Shown: positions 102 to 54,480, counted from the first letter of the stretch. The stretch: 64,000 bases of DNA from Octopus sinensis (GCF_006345805.1 NW_021836159.1:1-64000); one strand, 5' to 3'. Notes: generated by a model not told the origin, from the letters alone. Program-made: numbers and translations.

Positions 102-158
102 ATGCTTCAATCAACCGGTAGATTCCTGCTCTGCGCTTTTCTTGCTACAATAGTTTCT
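102..158 (+). CDS. Copy A exon 1, signal peptide ([19 protein letters not shown])
   Basis: ATG at 102, hydrophobic core, donor GTAAGT at 159. Joins exon 2 in phase 0 to give ...IVSPIVA|DY, a plausible cleavage site. Conserved at 33115. Confidence 0.8.
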
Positions 159-3100
159 GTAAGTATTCTGTCTTAGATTCCCTCCAAACCGAACATTCGC
201 GCGCACGCACACAGACACACACGCACACACACACACACACACACAACACACACACACAAACACACACACAAACACACACACGCACACCGATTCTGTATAA
301 TACATTTTTAGACACATGAGTGTCTTTATACATACATATGTATGCGTGTATGTATGTTTGTATGAGCATGCATACATGTGTATACATGAATATATATATA
401 TATATATATATATATATCAACAATCAAGGAACGGCCATAATAGGCCATTCACCCACTAGAAATAACAGCCAAAGCTTCAACCGCAAATAAAGATTAATTC
501 CGTAAACAGGAGAAAATTTAAAAAACATTTACCCTGTAATTTCTTGTACGATGCACCGTTTCATCTGCTGTTTAATGGTAAACTAACCTGATTAAATTAA
601 ATCAAGCCAATCTTCCATAGGCCCTCAGATTCTTCAGCAAGAAATAGCCAAGTCGGAATAGATATTTTCACGAGGCATTTCAGACCCTGCCAAGGTAATA
701 TCTGACCTAAAATTTTCAAATCGTCGCACTCGCGTGGCCGCTGGTGCCAAAAAGAATTCTACAAAATTTTTTTTGCCACCCTATATTGATTAATTATGAA
801 TTTTCTGGTTAATTCCGTAATGGAATCGACGGCTTATATTTATTTGCTGCCGATAAATTTGGCGCGAGTGCGACGATTTGAAAATTTTAGGTCAGATATT
901 ACCTTGACAGGGTCTGAAATGCCTCGTGAAAATATCTGTTCCGACTTGGCTATTTCTTGCTGAAGAATCTGAGGGCCTATGGAAGATTGGCTTGATTTAA
1001 TTTAATCAGGTTAGTTTACCATTAAACAGCAGATGAAACGGTGCATCGTACAAGAATTTACAGGGTAAATGTTTTTTAATTTTCTCCTGTTTACGGAATA
1101 ATCTTTATTTGCGGTTGAAGCTTTGGCTGTTATTTCTAGTGGGTGAATGGCCTATTATGGCCGTTCCTTGATTGTTGATGTTGAACTTAAAAATGGTCTA
1201 TGACTATTTAATTTTTTCCCACTAGGCCGCTGGTGGCAAAAAGAATTCTACAAAATTTTTTTGCCACCCTATATTGATTAATTATATATATATATATATA
1301 TATATATATATATATACATATATATATATGTGTGTGTGTGTGTGTGTATTCATACATATGTAAATACATACATACACATACGTACATACATAATATATAC
1401 ATGCATACATACATATACACACACAGGTATGTAATTATGTATTTATATATATGTGTATATATATGTATATATCACCTTGATCACCTTGACCGACCAGTCC
1501 GTCGGGCATCCATTTGACACCGCTGGTCACAGCACGCTGTCCACTCCCCACTGGATCGCGCCTTTCTCATCCACGTGATCCCAATCGTCCTCCTGAAATC
1601 GTAACTCCACCGCTGTGGAGGCCTTCCGGGTGGTCGTTTCAGCTCGCGCGAGTACCACTCGACAACTGCGCGGGCCCACTGATTATCGGTGAGCCAGGCG
1701 ACGTGTCCAGCCCATCTAAACTTGTGCGTGTATACTTTGCGATGACATCCCTCACGCCGGACTTCTTTCTGATGATCTCGCTACTGATGTGCTCTCTCAA
1801 CGAGATACCAAGCATTGATCTTTCCATGGCTATTTGAGCCGTTAACAGTCTCTGCTCTTCTCTCTTTGTTGTAGCCCATGTTTCATTACCTATTATATAT
1901 ATATATATGTATATATATGTATGCATATTCTTATATTCTTTTACTTGTTCCAGCCATTTGACTGCAGCCATGCTAGAATAGTACCTGTAATTGTGTGTGT
2001 GTGTGTGTGTGTGTGTGTGTGTGTACGTACGTGTGTGTACGTATGTGTGTGCATATATTTACATCTATGTGTATATATATACATACATATACCTCTATAC
2101 ATACGTATATATATACACATACATATATATATATATATACATGCATACACACATATATATAGATATAGATATACATATTTGTATATGAATATATATATAT
2201 ATGAATATATATATGTATGTATATATATATATATATATATATATTTATGTATATGTATATATATATAATTCATATACATATATATATATATATATATATA
2301 TAATATATATATATATATATATATATATATATATAATATATATATATATATATATATATATATATATATATATATATATATATATGAACAGTAAATTAAA
2401 TAGAGAAATACAAGTGATAATCTACTAATTTATTTATATTATAATATAATATGATGTACCATGAATAATATGTTATATAACCTAACATAACATAACATAA
2501 CATAACAAAAACATAACAAAGCCAAAAAAGCCAACAATTTGTTTCGACTTATATGCATCATTTGATTTATAAACTATTCATATCCATGTATACAAGTCTC
2601 TTCGGGGTTTTGGTTCAAAAAGACGGACGAAATTCCATGCAAAAAAACTGCGAGATTGTAAAATATTGATTCAAAAAAACCTGTTTAAGAGCGTCAGCAT
2701 TATGGTACTCGTTATGTATTCAGATACATAACGAGTACCATAAAAGCACAAAATTATGACGGACAAAATAATTAAGTAAAGAAAATATACATCTGTCAAA
2801 AAATGTTTCTATATGCCTCCCAAAAAATTAATTTAATTTATTGTTTGTAATTTGTAAATTTGTATTCATACACCTATCTCTGTGGTACTCAACTGACGTA
2901 CCTGTGAATTGAAGGATTTTTTTATTCGTTTGTTACATTTTATGTGTGTGTGTGTGGGTGTGTGCGCGCGTGTGTGTGTGTGCGCGCGTATGTGTGTGTG
3001 TATGTATGTATATGTGTGTGTGTATGTATATATGTATGTATATATGTATGTATATATGTATGTATGCATGTATGTATATATACTCTCTATATATGTATGT

Positions 3101-54100: not shown

Positions 54101-54480
54101 ACAAACATACACACAATCACAATTGCACACACAAATAGATACATATATACACACACACGCACCTCATGTTGCCAGTCTAATCAATTACATAAATGTGATC
54201 ATCGATAAATGTTGACTTCATAAAATATAGAGATAATTAAAATGCTAAATTCATTTAATTGACACTTGTAATGAAAATTTATTTTGTTTACTTTTTCTCC
54301 TTAGGCTTCAACTGTTCTGAACCTACAGGTCTTTTCCCTGACCCACAAAGCTGTAGACATTTTTATCAGTGTGACTGGAATATTGCCCAGAAAAAGGATT
54401 GCCCTGGAAACTTGCACTTCAACAATGTCAAGAAAGTGTGTGATTGGCCATACATTGCCAAATGCAATATCGGACAATAA
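33115..54480 (+). CDS. Copy B, whole gene span: secreted Delta-like C2-DSL-EGFx21-chitin-binding protein, 10 coding exons, 3171 nt CDS, ~1056 aa
   Basis: Exons 33115-33171, 34078-34267 (or duplicate 35590-35779), 41930-42012, 44190-44357, 45481-45625, 46954-47064, 47959-48078, 49625-51727, 52524-52541, 54305-54480. Same phases as copy A, no in-frame stops. Confidence 0.88.
34078..34267 (+). CDS. Copy B exon 2, C2 N-half
   Basis: 190 nt, about 3 nt and 1 aa (T/K) different from copy A exon 2; splice sites intact. Confidence 0.85.
34610..34668 (+). pseudogene. ATG-less duplicate of exon 1 (first)
   Basis: caat-ttt-caatcaaccagtagattcctgctctgcgcttttcttgctacaataacttct|GTAAGT. The cagcATGc segment is deleted and the donor is retained. 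Confidence 0.8.
35590..35779 (+). CDS. Duplicate exon 2 of copy B, 1512 nt downstream of the first
   Basis: Coding sequence reads identical to 34078-34267, with intact acceptor and donor. Confidence 0.75.
36122..36180 (+). pseudogene. ATG-less duplicate of exon 1 (second)
   Basis: Same sequence as 34610-34668, offset 1512 nt. Confidence 0.8.
36412..36625. mobile_element. Palindromic foldback/MITE-like element, ~100-bp arms, ~12-nt loop
   Basis: aacttataaatgagggcaaacgaaaaaatttctaatgcc...aatacgcacgct / agcgtgcgtatt...ggcattagaaatttttttcgtttgccctcatttataagtt. Confidence 0.75.
36995..37860 (+). mobile_element. Penelope-like element 3' fragment (ORF C-terminus plus pLTR-like region with degenerate hammerhead core)
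   Basis: [32 protein letters not shown] resembles, from memory, the Y.I.W.I....Y....RC.LCL.EK tail of PLE GIY-YIG ORFs. CTGATGA 37733-37739 ... GAAAC-TA-GTA 37759-37768. Confidence 0.6.
38300..39835. repeat. Compound CA-rich low-complexity tract with internal 50-130 bp duplications
   Basis: Recurrent blocks cacacatacgtacatatccacgaacgcacatgcgcctccc (~38330, ~38725) and acacacatgcacacaaacaaaatacacacgcac (~38665, ~38835, ~39408). Confidence 0.9.
41930..42012 (+). CDS. Copy B exon 3 ([28 protein letters not shown])
   Basis: AG/GT boundaries, 83 nt, paralog of 8029-8111. Confidence 0.85.
44190..44357 (+). CDS. Copy B exon 4, C2 C-half
   Basis: 168 nt, AG/GTAAGT; overlaps ORF 44229..44423 ([42 protein letters not shown]). 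Confidence 0.85.
45481..45625 (+). CDS. Copy B exon 5, DSL domain
   Basis: [48 protein letters not shown]; same Cys spacing as copy A. Confidence 0.88.
46954..47064 (+). CDS. Copy B exon 6, EGF1
   Basis: [36 protein letters not shown]; phase 1-1. Confidence 0.9.
47959..48078 (+). CDS. Copy B exon 7, cbEGF-type EGF2
   Basis: [39 protein letters not shown]; phase 1-1. Confidence 0.9.
49625..51727 (+). CDS. Copy B exon 8, nineteen EGF repeats
   Basis: Lies within ORF 49615..51768. Acceptor atctAG at 49623-49624, donor G|GTAAGC at 51728; 2103 nt. Confidence 0.92.
49981..51075 (+). repeat. Coding tandem repeat: 5 near-identical 219-bp (73-aa, two-EGF) units, followed by a diverged sixth from 51076
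   Basis: ATCTGTCAAAATGGTGGA recurs at 49981, 50200, 50419, 50638, 50857 and 51076. Confidence 0.97.
52524..52541 (+). CDS. Copy B exon 9, 18-nt microexon (VPDRQA)
   Basis: ttcttttgtAG TACCAGACCGCCAAGCAA GTAAGT. Confidence 0.7.
54305..54480 (+). CDS. Copy B exon 10, chitin-binding type-2 domain and stop
   Basis: [57 protein letters not shown]. Confidence 0.92.

Follow-up and report, generated by a model that had tools for sequence, protein, structure and literature searches.

What an animal does with a Notch-ligand-like head that is joined to a chitin-binding domain instead of a membrane anchor is the question raised by a 64,000-nucleotide stretch of DNA from Octopus sinensis (GCF_006345805.1, NW_021836159.1, positions 1-64000), referred to below in its whole length as the window. 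Textbooks describe DSL ligands such as Delta and Serrate as type I membrane proteins, and the way in which Notch is activated hinges on this anchoring. The window carries two tandem genes whose products open with the C2-DSL-EGF module of these ligands and close with a CBM14 chitin-binding domain. The original prediction, made from the nucleotide sequence, proposed that CBM14 replaces the membrane tether and that the proteins display a Delta-like head on chitinous matrix, as Notch ligand or decoy, or alternatively serve mucosal immunity. The follow-up analysis upholds the architecture, the secretion, the tandem family and the exchange of the transmembrane part for CBM14, and does not support the role of Notch ligand or decoy. 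Judged from sequence comparison, it is reasonably probable that the family consists of chitin-anchored, secreted adaptor or matrix proteins, derived by exon shuffling from a Delta-like gene and no longer canonical Notch ligands.

Gene models and domain architecture

Gene models were assembled from reading frames and splice sites and then corrected against database proteins. These hand-rebuilt models confirm two intact 10-exon genes on the + strand, with the coordinates and exon number first proposed:

102-17865, + strand: gene 1, 10 exons, 1743 nt, 580 aa
33115-54480, + strand: gene 2, 10 exons, 3171 nt, 1056 aa

The ATG of gene 1 lies at 102 and the stop codon of gene 2 ends at 54480. All introns in the models are of the GT-AG type (18/18), and each gene has a single stop in a frame that is otherwise open.

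Both spliced proteins consist of a signal peptide, a C2/MNNL domain, a DSL domain, 8 or 21 EGF modules, a 6-residue linker and CBM14 followed by the stop, as originally read from the DNA. In a Pfam profile check of these proteins MNNL, DSL, EGF and CBM_14 each exceed the gathering score. MNNL (PF07657) scores 31.9 bits (cut-off 22.5) and DSL (PF01414) 41.1 and 43.9 bits (cut-off 24.2), the six DSL cysteines being present with the spacing found in 115 other DSL domains. Pfam recognizes eight EGF stretches in gene 1, and counting of cysteines gives exactly 8 modules for gene 1 and 21 for gene 2; many EGFs carry O-fucose and O-glucose consensus sites. CBM_14 (PF01607) reaches 49.2 bits in gene 1 and 53.0 bits in gene 2 (cut-off 22.1) and occupies the last 57 residues, with six cysteines in the pattern C-x12-C-x5-C-x9-C-x12-C-x7-C. 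Among solved structures CBM14 comes closest to 6g9c, the chitin-binding domain at the C-terminus of a GH18 chitinase (E 7e-12, ~50% identity), and further PDB sequence matches include chitotriosidase, tachycitin and Der p 23-type allergens. Given the six-cysteine spacing and the identity to the 6g9c chitin-binding domain, the octopus CBM14 looks functional.

The head aligns end to end with the solved fragments of DLL1, DLL4, JAG1, Serrate and Delta. An AlphaFold (AF2) model of residues 20-291 has a mean predicted local distance difference test (pLDDT) score of 80, and a Foldseek search of the head model against the PDB returns Notch-ligand C2-DSL-EGF structures for all of its top 24 matches (E 1e-19 to 1e-13). 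Secretion is borne out by the N-terminal signal peptide as the only hydrophobic stretch, the lack of a transmembrane segment and the stop directly after CBM14. A scan downstream of exon 8 found no transmembrane-like exon common to both paralogues, and returned only hydrophobic open reading frames (ORFs) derived from AT-rich sequence and microsatellites. By Pfam the octopus proteins contain MNNL, DSL, EGF types and CBM_14 only, with no immunoglobulin domain and with neither the CUB-like N-terminal nor the avidin-like C-terminal domain of the fibropellin type.

The exons that encode these domains are as follows, all on the + strand:

102-158, +: gene 1 exon 1, ATG and signal peptide; ends in phase 0, matches the XP_029657710.1 N-terminus identically and encodes the sole hydrophobic segment
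5085-5274, +: gene 1 exon 2, first part of C2/MNNL, inside the Pfam MNNL match
8029-8111, +: gene 1 exon 3, middle of C2
10105-10272, +: gene 1 exon 4, last part of C2 (KFVVSF…LTYQIR), with the RQPFQ/KFVV junction common to all database models
10917-11061, +: gene 1 exon 5, DSL with replaced Notch-binding loop (Pfam DSL 41 bits)
11854-11964, +: gene 1 exon 6, EGF1, an ordinary EGF and not of the DOS type, phase 1-1
12654-12773, +: gene 1 exon 7, EGF2, phase 1-1
14359-15033, +: gene 1 exon 8, EGF3-EGF8 in a single exon, phase 1-1
16134-16151, +: gene 1 exon 9, 18-nt linker micro-exon, (V)PDPQA(S), phase 1-1
17690-17865, +: gene 1 exon 10, CBM14 (peritrophin-A) and stop (Pfam CBM_14 49.2 bits)
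33115-33171, +: gene 2 exon 1, ATG and signal peptide
34078-34267, +: gene 2 exon 2, start of C2, 190 nt
35590-35779, +: second copy of gene 2 exon 2, apparently identical, 190 nt, splice sites intact
41930-42012, +: gene 2 exon 3, C2
44190-44357, +: gene 2 exon 4, C2
45481-45625, +: gene 2 exon 5, DSL (Pfam DSL 43.9 bits)
46954-47064, +: gene 2 exon 6, EGF1
47959-48078, +: gene 2 exon 7, EGF2
49625-51727, +: gene 2 exon 8, 19 EGFs in a single 2103-nt exon
52524-52541, +: gene 2 exon 9, 18-nt linker micro-exon, (V)PDRQA(S)
54305-54480, +: gene 2 exon 10, CBM14 and stop (Pfam CBM_14 53 bits)

Exons 6-9, which comprise the EGF exons and the 18-nt micro-exon, and the CBM14 exon all start in phase 1, which is the classical signature of exon shuffling. 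The micro-exon encodes the whole 6-residue linker, VPDPQA in gene 1 and VPDRQA in gene 2, and equivalent linkers are present in O. bimaculoides proteins. It is apparently alternatively spliced, since RefSeq isoforms differ at the linker (EVPDPQASFKC, EDPQASFKC and EGFKC) and one isoform has a direct exon 8-to-10 junction.

Departure of the head from the Notch-ligand signature

The loop that follows C-x3-C in DSL was compared with 115 non-octopus DSL domains of equal cysteine spacing, in which it reads [RK]-P-R-D-D-x-F-G-H-Y (R in 92/115, D in 96/115, F in 62/115, G in 111/115, H in 109/115 and Y in 93/115). All octopus members have [DE]-[IN]-P-[TI]-[SIT]-E-Q-[TV]-R-F at this place. In JAG1 numbering, counted on the human sequence, the exchanges are F199 to R/K, R201 to D/E, R203 to P, D205 to S/T/I, F207 to Q, G208 to T/V and H209 to R. 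Of these residues of the DSL face, F207 and R203 are named in published work: JAG1 with the exchange F207A neither binds nor activates Notch (PMC3888931), and recognition of Notch is impaired by R203K (PMC5538765). The tryptophan of the GWxG motif, found in 116 of 119 DSL domains, is F in the octopus family. Loss of the YY and GWxG motifs marks the non-activating DLL3, a protein with a divergent DSL that neither binds nor activates Notch in trans and whose EGF1-2 spacing is treated in the same work (PMC2064846).

The DOS motif overlaps EGF1-2 of the canonical ligands. Under its strict consensus (PMC2504490), read together with the alignment, it occurs in 0/9 family members versus 14/63 other DSL proteins, in which it always stands right after DSL. 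The aspartates D140 and D144 in the beta5-beta6 loop of the JAG1 C2 domain, a loop that serves Ca-dependent lipid binding, coordinate calcium and are required for full activation (D140A/D144A; PMC3888931). The corresponding columns, in a loop whose alignment is uncertain, hold T and N in the octopus family versus D or another acidic residue in relatives, and the C2 calcium-binding aspartates appear to be lost. With the DSL loop and the GWxG tryptophan replaced and the DOS motif absent, display of a Delta-like head as Notch ligand or decoy is not supported.

The replacement residues are themselves conserved across both subfamilies of the octopus proteins. Between gene 1 and gene 2 the ratio of nonsynonymous to synonymous divergence (dN/dS) is 0.29 in C2 and 0.30 in DSL, and 0.61 and ~1.2 in the EGF parts. 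Because the new residues are conserved and dN/dS is low in C2 and DSL, the head is functional, though probably with another partner, which is unlikely to be Notch bound in the canonical way.

Taxonomic range and ancestry

Independent database models agree with the rebuilt genes. XP_029657710.1 (O. sinensis) equals gene 1 identically save for an internal deletion in exon 8, and two RefSeq isoforms have an in-exon deletion (CICP/LHFKGKYCE) inside exon 8. All complete models from O. sinensis, O. vulgaris and O. bimaculoides (RefSeq, ENA) share the CBM14 C-terminus and have no transmembrane helix, and the micro-exon and CBM14 exon are kept in every paralogue, in two subfamilies and three species. 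The automatic names of these proteins are 'delta-like protein 1', 'jagged-1b-like' and 'neurogenic locus notch homolog protein 1-like' in O. sinensis and 'fibropellin-1(-like)' in O. bimaculoides. Several RefSeq isoforms (entries XP_036362565.1, XP_036362569.1 and XP_036362564.1) join the N-terminal exons of one paralogue to the EGF or CBM14 exons of another. Such chimeric isoforms may stem from read-through or trans-paralogue splicing, from template switching in repeats or from model building. One O. vulgaris model runs into an intron.

The two subfamilies are ~60% identical in C2 and 70-77% identical in CBM14, so CBM14 is constrained at least as much as the head. As both subfamilies have CBM14, the fusion is older than their split and than the divergence of O. 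bimaculoides and O. vulgaris. An Argonauta hians fragment with 48% identity to the first C2 exon belongs to the family, which on this account looks octopod-specific. An exhaustive phmmer search of 1.84 billion representatives returned only Octopus sequences below 1e-30, the next matches falling at ~1e-15 to 1e-10. A word-indexed homologue search gave 2 matches with the head alone and none with CBM14 alone, and no further CBM14 was found among ~280 collected DSL/EGF relatives.

The best outside matches over C2-DSL-EGF2 are a Gigantopelta 'delta-like protein C', a Haliotis protein, a Logan contig and a Patiria 'fibropellin-1-like'. All four have ordinary EGFs after DSL and the canonical DSL loop, and 3/4 have a strong C-terminal transmembrane helix. 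The Gigantopelta aegis and Patiria miniata proteins are ~30% identical to the octopus proteins over this region, and their clade shares with the octopus family the VKFKxYxN start of C2, ordinary EGFs directly after DSL and the lack of a DOS motif. Unlike the octopus proteins, members of this clade retain the PRDDxxGHY loop of canonical type and an acidic loop in C2, and they have numerous calcium-binding EGFs together with a juxtamembrane region and a strong transmembrane helix. Since the Gigantopelta, Patiria and Logan sequences combine a like head and EGFs with a C-terminal transmembrane helix, they support the proposal that the CBM14 exon took the place of the membrane-anchoring 3' end. A non-canonical transmembrane Delta-like clade of this kind is probably the ancestral type.

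Tandem array and gene conversion

The tandem family that had been proposed is present in the window as two paralogues, and the array continues on O. sinensis CM016868.1. Window positions 6783-18917 recur at 40684-55597 (80-93% identity), and the 5' part, 1-5485, is related to sequence at 33013-36379. Besides gene 1, the array on CM016868.1 has a copy resembling gene 2 whose product is 1441 aa long, a third paralogue of 763 aa and one or more further members. Window positions 1-27859 and 54189-64000 match CM016868.1 52373989-52460834 with 99.4-99.7% identity in permuted order, gene 1 being the last paralogue of that locus and the window's tail its start. Such permutation at this identity is expected of a redundant or haplotype scaffold of a tandem array, and the scaffold of the window probably duplicates, as a redundant or haplotype sequence, a portion of a longer tandem array that has four paralogues or more.

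Within gene 2 exon 8 a second level of tandem repetition is found:

49976-51273, + strand: tandem array, 219-bp unit (two EGFs, 73 aa) x 5.9, 95% matches

Gene 2 encodes 1056 aa versus 1441 aa in its 99%-identical chromosomal counterpart (start of the CM016868.1 locus, 1-292). Either assemblies or haplotypes seem to vary in how many EGF pairs they carry, or collapse of one assembly accounts for the difference. From the 219-bp array and the longer counterpart it follows that the length of the stalk evolves quickly.

Gene 1 and gene 2 are 95-98% identical in exons 1-4 and the first two EGFs of exon 8, with neighbouring introns at 84-93%, and 80-88% identical in exons 5-7 and 10. Synonymous divergence (dS) is 0.11 in C2, 0.37 in DSL, 0.35 in EGF1-2 and 0.04 in EGF3-4, a mosaic that points to patchy gene conversion.

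The 5' part of gene 2 contains a separate 1512-bp tandem duplication (intron 1/5' region, window 33013-36380), which includes the second exon 2 copy listed above and a degenerate first exon in two copies:

34616-34683, second copy 36128-36195, + strand: pseudo-exon 1, ATG lost

As each exon 2 copy is 190 nt long, inclusion of both in one transcript would shift the frame.

Other features of the window

A candidate extra exon between exons 3 and 4 (9353-9418, LTIYHIASS…) has a weak donor (gttacc) and appears in no database model, and was rejected as intronic. The stretch is 98% identical to its counterpart in gene 2 (43525-43590); both are open, follow an AG and would keep the frame if spliced in at that point. 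In both repeats the intron that separates these two exons also contains a conserved ORF of 74-88 aa, which is not of low complexity, has no Pfam match and may be an old transposon fragment. The window is AT-rich and microsatellite-rich and contains fragments of long interspersed elements (LINEs), among them a broken-frame non-LTR (long terminal repeat), LINE-type retrotransposon between the two genes:

8875-9141 and 43089-43313, - strand: conserved intronic ORF of 74-88 aa
23388-28001, - strand: broken-frame retrotransposon
23388-24971, - strand: its reverse transcriptase (RVT_1 49.9 bits)
25782-26789, - strand: its APE-type endonuclease ORF (Exo_endo_phos 62.8 bits)
26922-28001: its GC-rich ORF1-like piece
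28590-30760, and 58591-60833 after gene 2, - strand: degenerate retrotransposon fragments
38268-39840: CA/ACAC-rich low-complexity block of 1.6 kb in gene 2 intron 2

The block in intron 2 has a GC skew of -0.57, an extreme strand asymmetry, and gives rise to spurious long ORFs that are His/Thr-rich on one strand and Cys/Val-rich on the other. The recorded gene calls for CM016868.1 include, on the other strand, a gene for a 979-aa kinesin (Kinesin, FHA and KIF1B domains), which spans locus positions 1900-86846 and with them the whole cluster; the Delta-like/CBM14 genes presumably lie in one of its introns.

Discussion

The history favoured here starts from a transmembrane Delta-like gene of the non-canonical, EGF-rich clade, which would have lost its 3' exons for juxtamembrane region, transmembrane helix and tail. 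Two exons of phase 1 would have been acquired, namely the micro-exon and one for a chitinase-like CBM14. Tandem multiplication would have followed, with gene conversion and expansion of EGF pairs. In the secreted product the C-terminus would bind chitin fibrils, the disulphide-rich EGF array would serve as a stalk or spacer whose length can evolve, and the C2-DSL head, which is conserved, would bind a partner that is probably not Notch in the canonical way. A signalling ligand taken out of service would thereby have become an adaptor or cross-linker of the matrix, anchored on chitin, with chitinous linings, mucosal surfaces and saliva as candidate sites. A precedent is octovafibrin, in which an octopus uses a secreted EGF array with terminal binding domains as extracellular structural material (PMC10336842).

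Several points weigh against this account. The YY motif of DSL is retained in the octopus family and, together with the O-fucose and O-glucose sites on the EGFs, may leave room for some interaction of the Notch-pathway kind. That C2 appears to have lost its calcium ligands is read from the alignment of a loop, and the chitinase origin of the CBM14 exon is suggested by PDB similarity only. The exon 8-9-10 junctions, as modelled, rest on splice signals, phase, conservation and automatic models; some of the latter are visibly chimeric between paralogues, and the transcript evidence is second-hand. Finally, if C2 does not bind lipid, nothing concrete has been proposed as the target of the head.

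The alternative closest to the original prediction is a matrix-tethered Notch ligand or decoy, in which CBM14 fixes the Delta-like head to chitin and a cell with Notch becomes activated by pulling on it, so that endocytosis of the ligand is not needed, or in which the soluble or immobilized head blocks Notch. Genuine homology of C2-DSL-EGF and its fold, retention of YY and of every DSL cysteine, purifying selection on the head and the glycosylation sites of the EGFs would fit this explanation, and secreted DSL proteins of C. elegans act, likewise without DOS motifs (PMC2504490). The conserved DSL face is nevertheless replaced in full, including the F207 (now Q) and R203 (now P) equivalents, with reversed charge at the F199 and R201 equivalents, the near-invariant G-H turned into T/V-R and the GWxG tryptophan into F. 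F207A alone abolishes Notch binding (PMC3888931), DLL3 with its divergent DSL neither binds nor activates Notch in trans (PMC2064846), EGF1-2 of the DOS type are absent and the C2 calcium-binding aspartates needed for full activation (PMC3888931) appear lost. The chitin-tethered ligand is thus disfavoured by sequence, and we regard the tethered ligand or decoy as quite unlikely. Its strictest form, a true Notch ligand that has re-evolved its DSL interface and uses the chitin cuticle as mechanical hold instead of membrane anchor and endocytosis, is very unlikely; if true, the chitin-held ligand would be a cell-free Notch activator that reports contact or strain in sucker lining, beak, radula or gut cuticle.

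A role in mucosal immunity is unlikely. VCBPs of amphioxus and Ciona are secreted proteins with an N-terminal binding head and one C-terminal chitin-binding domain, encoded by clustered genes, and by analogy CBM14 could hold secreted recognition molecules in chitin-rich mucus of the gut or body surface while the head or the variable EGF array binds microbes. Besides this parallel in secretion, recognition head, single C-terminal chitin-binding domain and tandem cluster, the rapid evolution of copy number and length (8 versus 21 EGFs, the 219-bp array at 95%, the 1441-aa chromosomal product), the faster change of the EGF parts than of the head and the gene conversion indicated by the mosaic dS would suit such a system. 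Yet the proteins have no immunoglobulin, lectin or other known pattern-recognition domain, constraint is least on the repetitive stalk and not on the presumed recognition head, and to our knowledge C2-DSL modules have no microbial ligand. The VCBP head consists of two V-type immunoglobulin domains without an EGF stalk, and the likeness is one of analogy only. Octopuses feed on chitin-clad prey, and the family's CBM14 is most like the C-terminal chitin-binding domain of GH18 chitinases; a salivary or digestive factor that binds crustacean prey cuticle, or other foreign chitin, beside the secreted chitinases of the octopus would accord with both, but the idea is pure conjecture, gives the C2-DSL head no role and is very unlikely. 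That the fusion is never made, the CBM14 exon being a separate small gene or the loci decaying pseudogenes, is scarcely credible. Several RefSeq isoforms do join paralogues, one O. vulgaris model does enter an intron and gene 2 has duplicated 5' exons; against these stand fully open genes with 18/18 canonical introns, a CBM14 exon whose phase 1 fits exon 8 and the micro-exon and which has no visible signal-peptide exon of its own, conservation of both 3' exons in every paralogue of two subfamilies and three species, and dN/dS below 1 in the head.

The octopus proteins can be compared with several known systems. With the canonical ligands (Delta/DLL1/DLL4, Serrate/Jagged1/2) they share the C2(MNNL)-DSL-EGF module, its predicted fold, the six DSL cysteines and YY, but they end in CBM14 without transmembrane helix or cytoplasmic tail, and the DSL face, the GWxG tryptophan, the DOS-type EGF1-2 and apparently the C2 calcium aspartates are replaced. 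C. elegans DSL-1 and its relatives, which are secreted and lack DOS (PMC2504490), and DLL3, whose DSL is divergent and which fails to activate Notch in trans (PMC2064846), likewise depart from the type I DOS pattern. Unlike the octopus family, neither the worm proteins nor DLL3 have a carbohydrate-binding module, and the worm proteins are still Notch ligands. Octovafibrin and the sea-urchin fibropellins are, as the octopus family would be, structural, secreted tandem EGF arrays with terminal binding or assembly domains, but these ends are C-type lectins in octovafibrin and CUB/avidin-like in fibropellins (PMC10336842), and neither has C2-DSL or CBM14. Octovafibrin itself was considered as the identity of the octopus products and rejected, being a different protein (C-type lectin-29 EGF-C-type lectin). 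The six-cysteine spacing of the tail is that of CBM14/peritrophin-A proteins, which include chitinase C-termini, peritrophins, obstructors and squid beak proteins; the squid beak protein DgCBP-3 is a weak match to the octopus CBM14. In contrast to these proteins, the octopus family has a single CBM14 at the end of a protein derived from a signalling ligand.

The original prediction knew of no fusion of DSL with CBM14. In the searchable literature no paper was found on a DSL protein with a chitin-binding or peritrophin domain or on these accessions, and an Argonaut egg-case proteome preprint makes no mention of DSL or Notch proteins. As a correction, RefSeq/UniProt has listed the proteins since 2015, with automatic names that mislead. 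It is a real and old fusion, undescribed in the literature searched and evolutionarily instructive.

For the evolution of signalling proteins, the octopus genes are a whole conserved, tandemly expanding family in which a ligand head has been severed from the membrane and joined to a chitin-binding module, probably by phase-1 exon shuffling, a clean natural case of a signalling ligand that was either retired into the extracellular matrix or given a new use there. In public databases the family goes under the wrong labels Delta, Jagged, Notch or fibropellin, and too many 'Notch ligands' are counted in octopus genomes. Should the head still engage Notch, it would be the first natural matrix-immobilized Notch ligand. 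Notch structural biology gains a natural 'face-swap' of DSL whose new partner can be fished out, and cephalopod biology gains a candidate component of chitinous structures.

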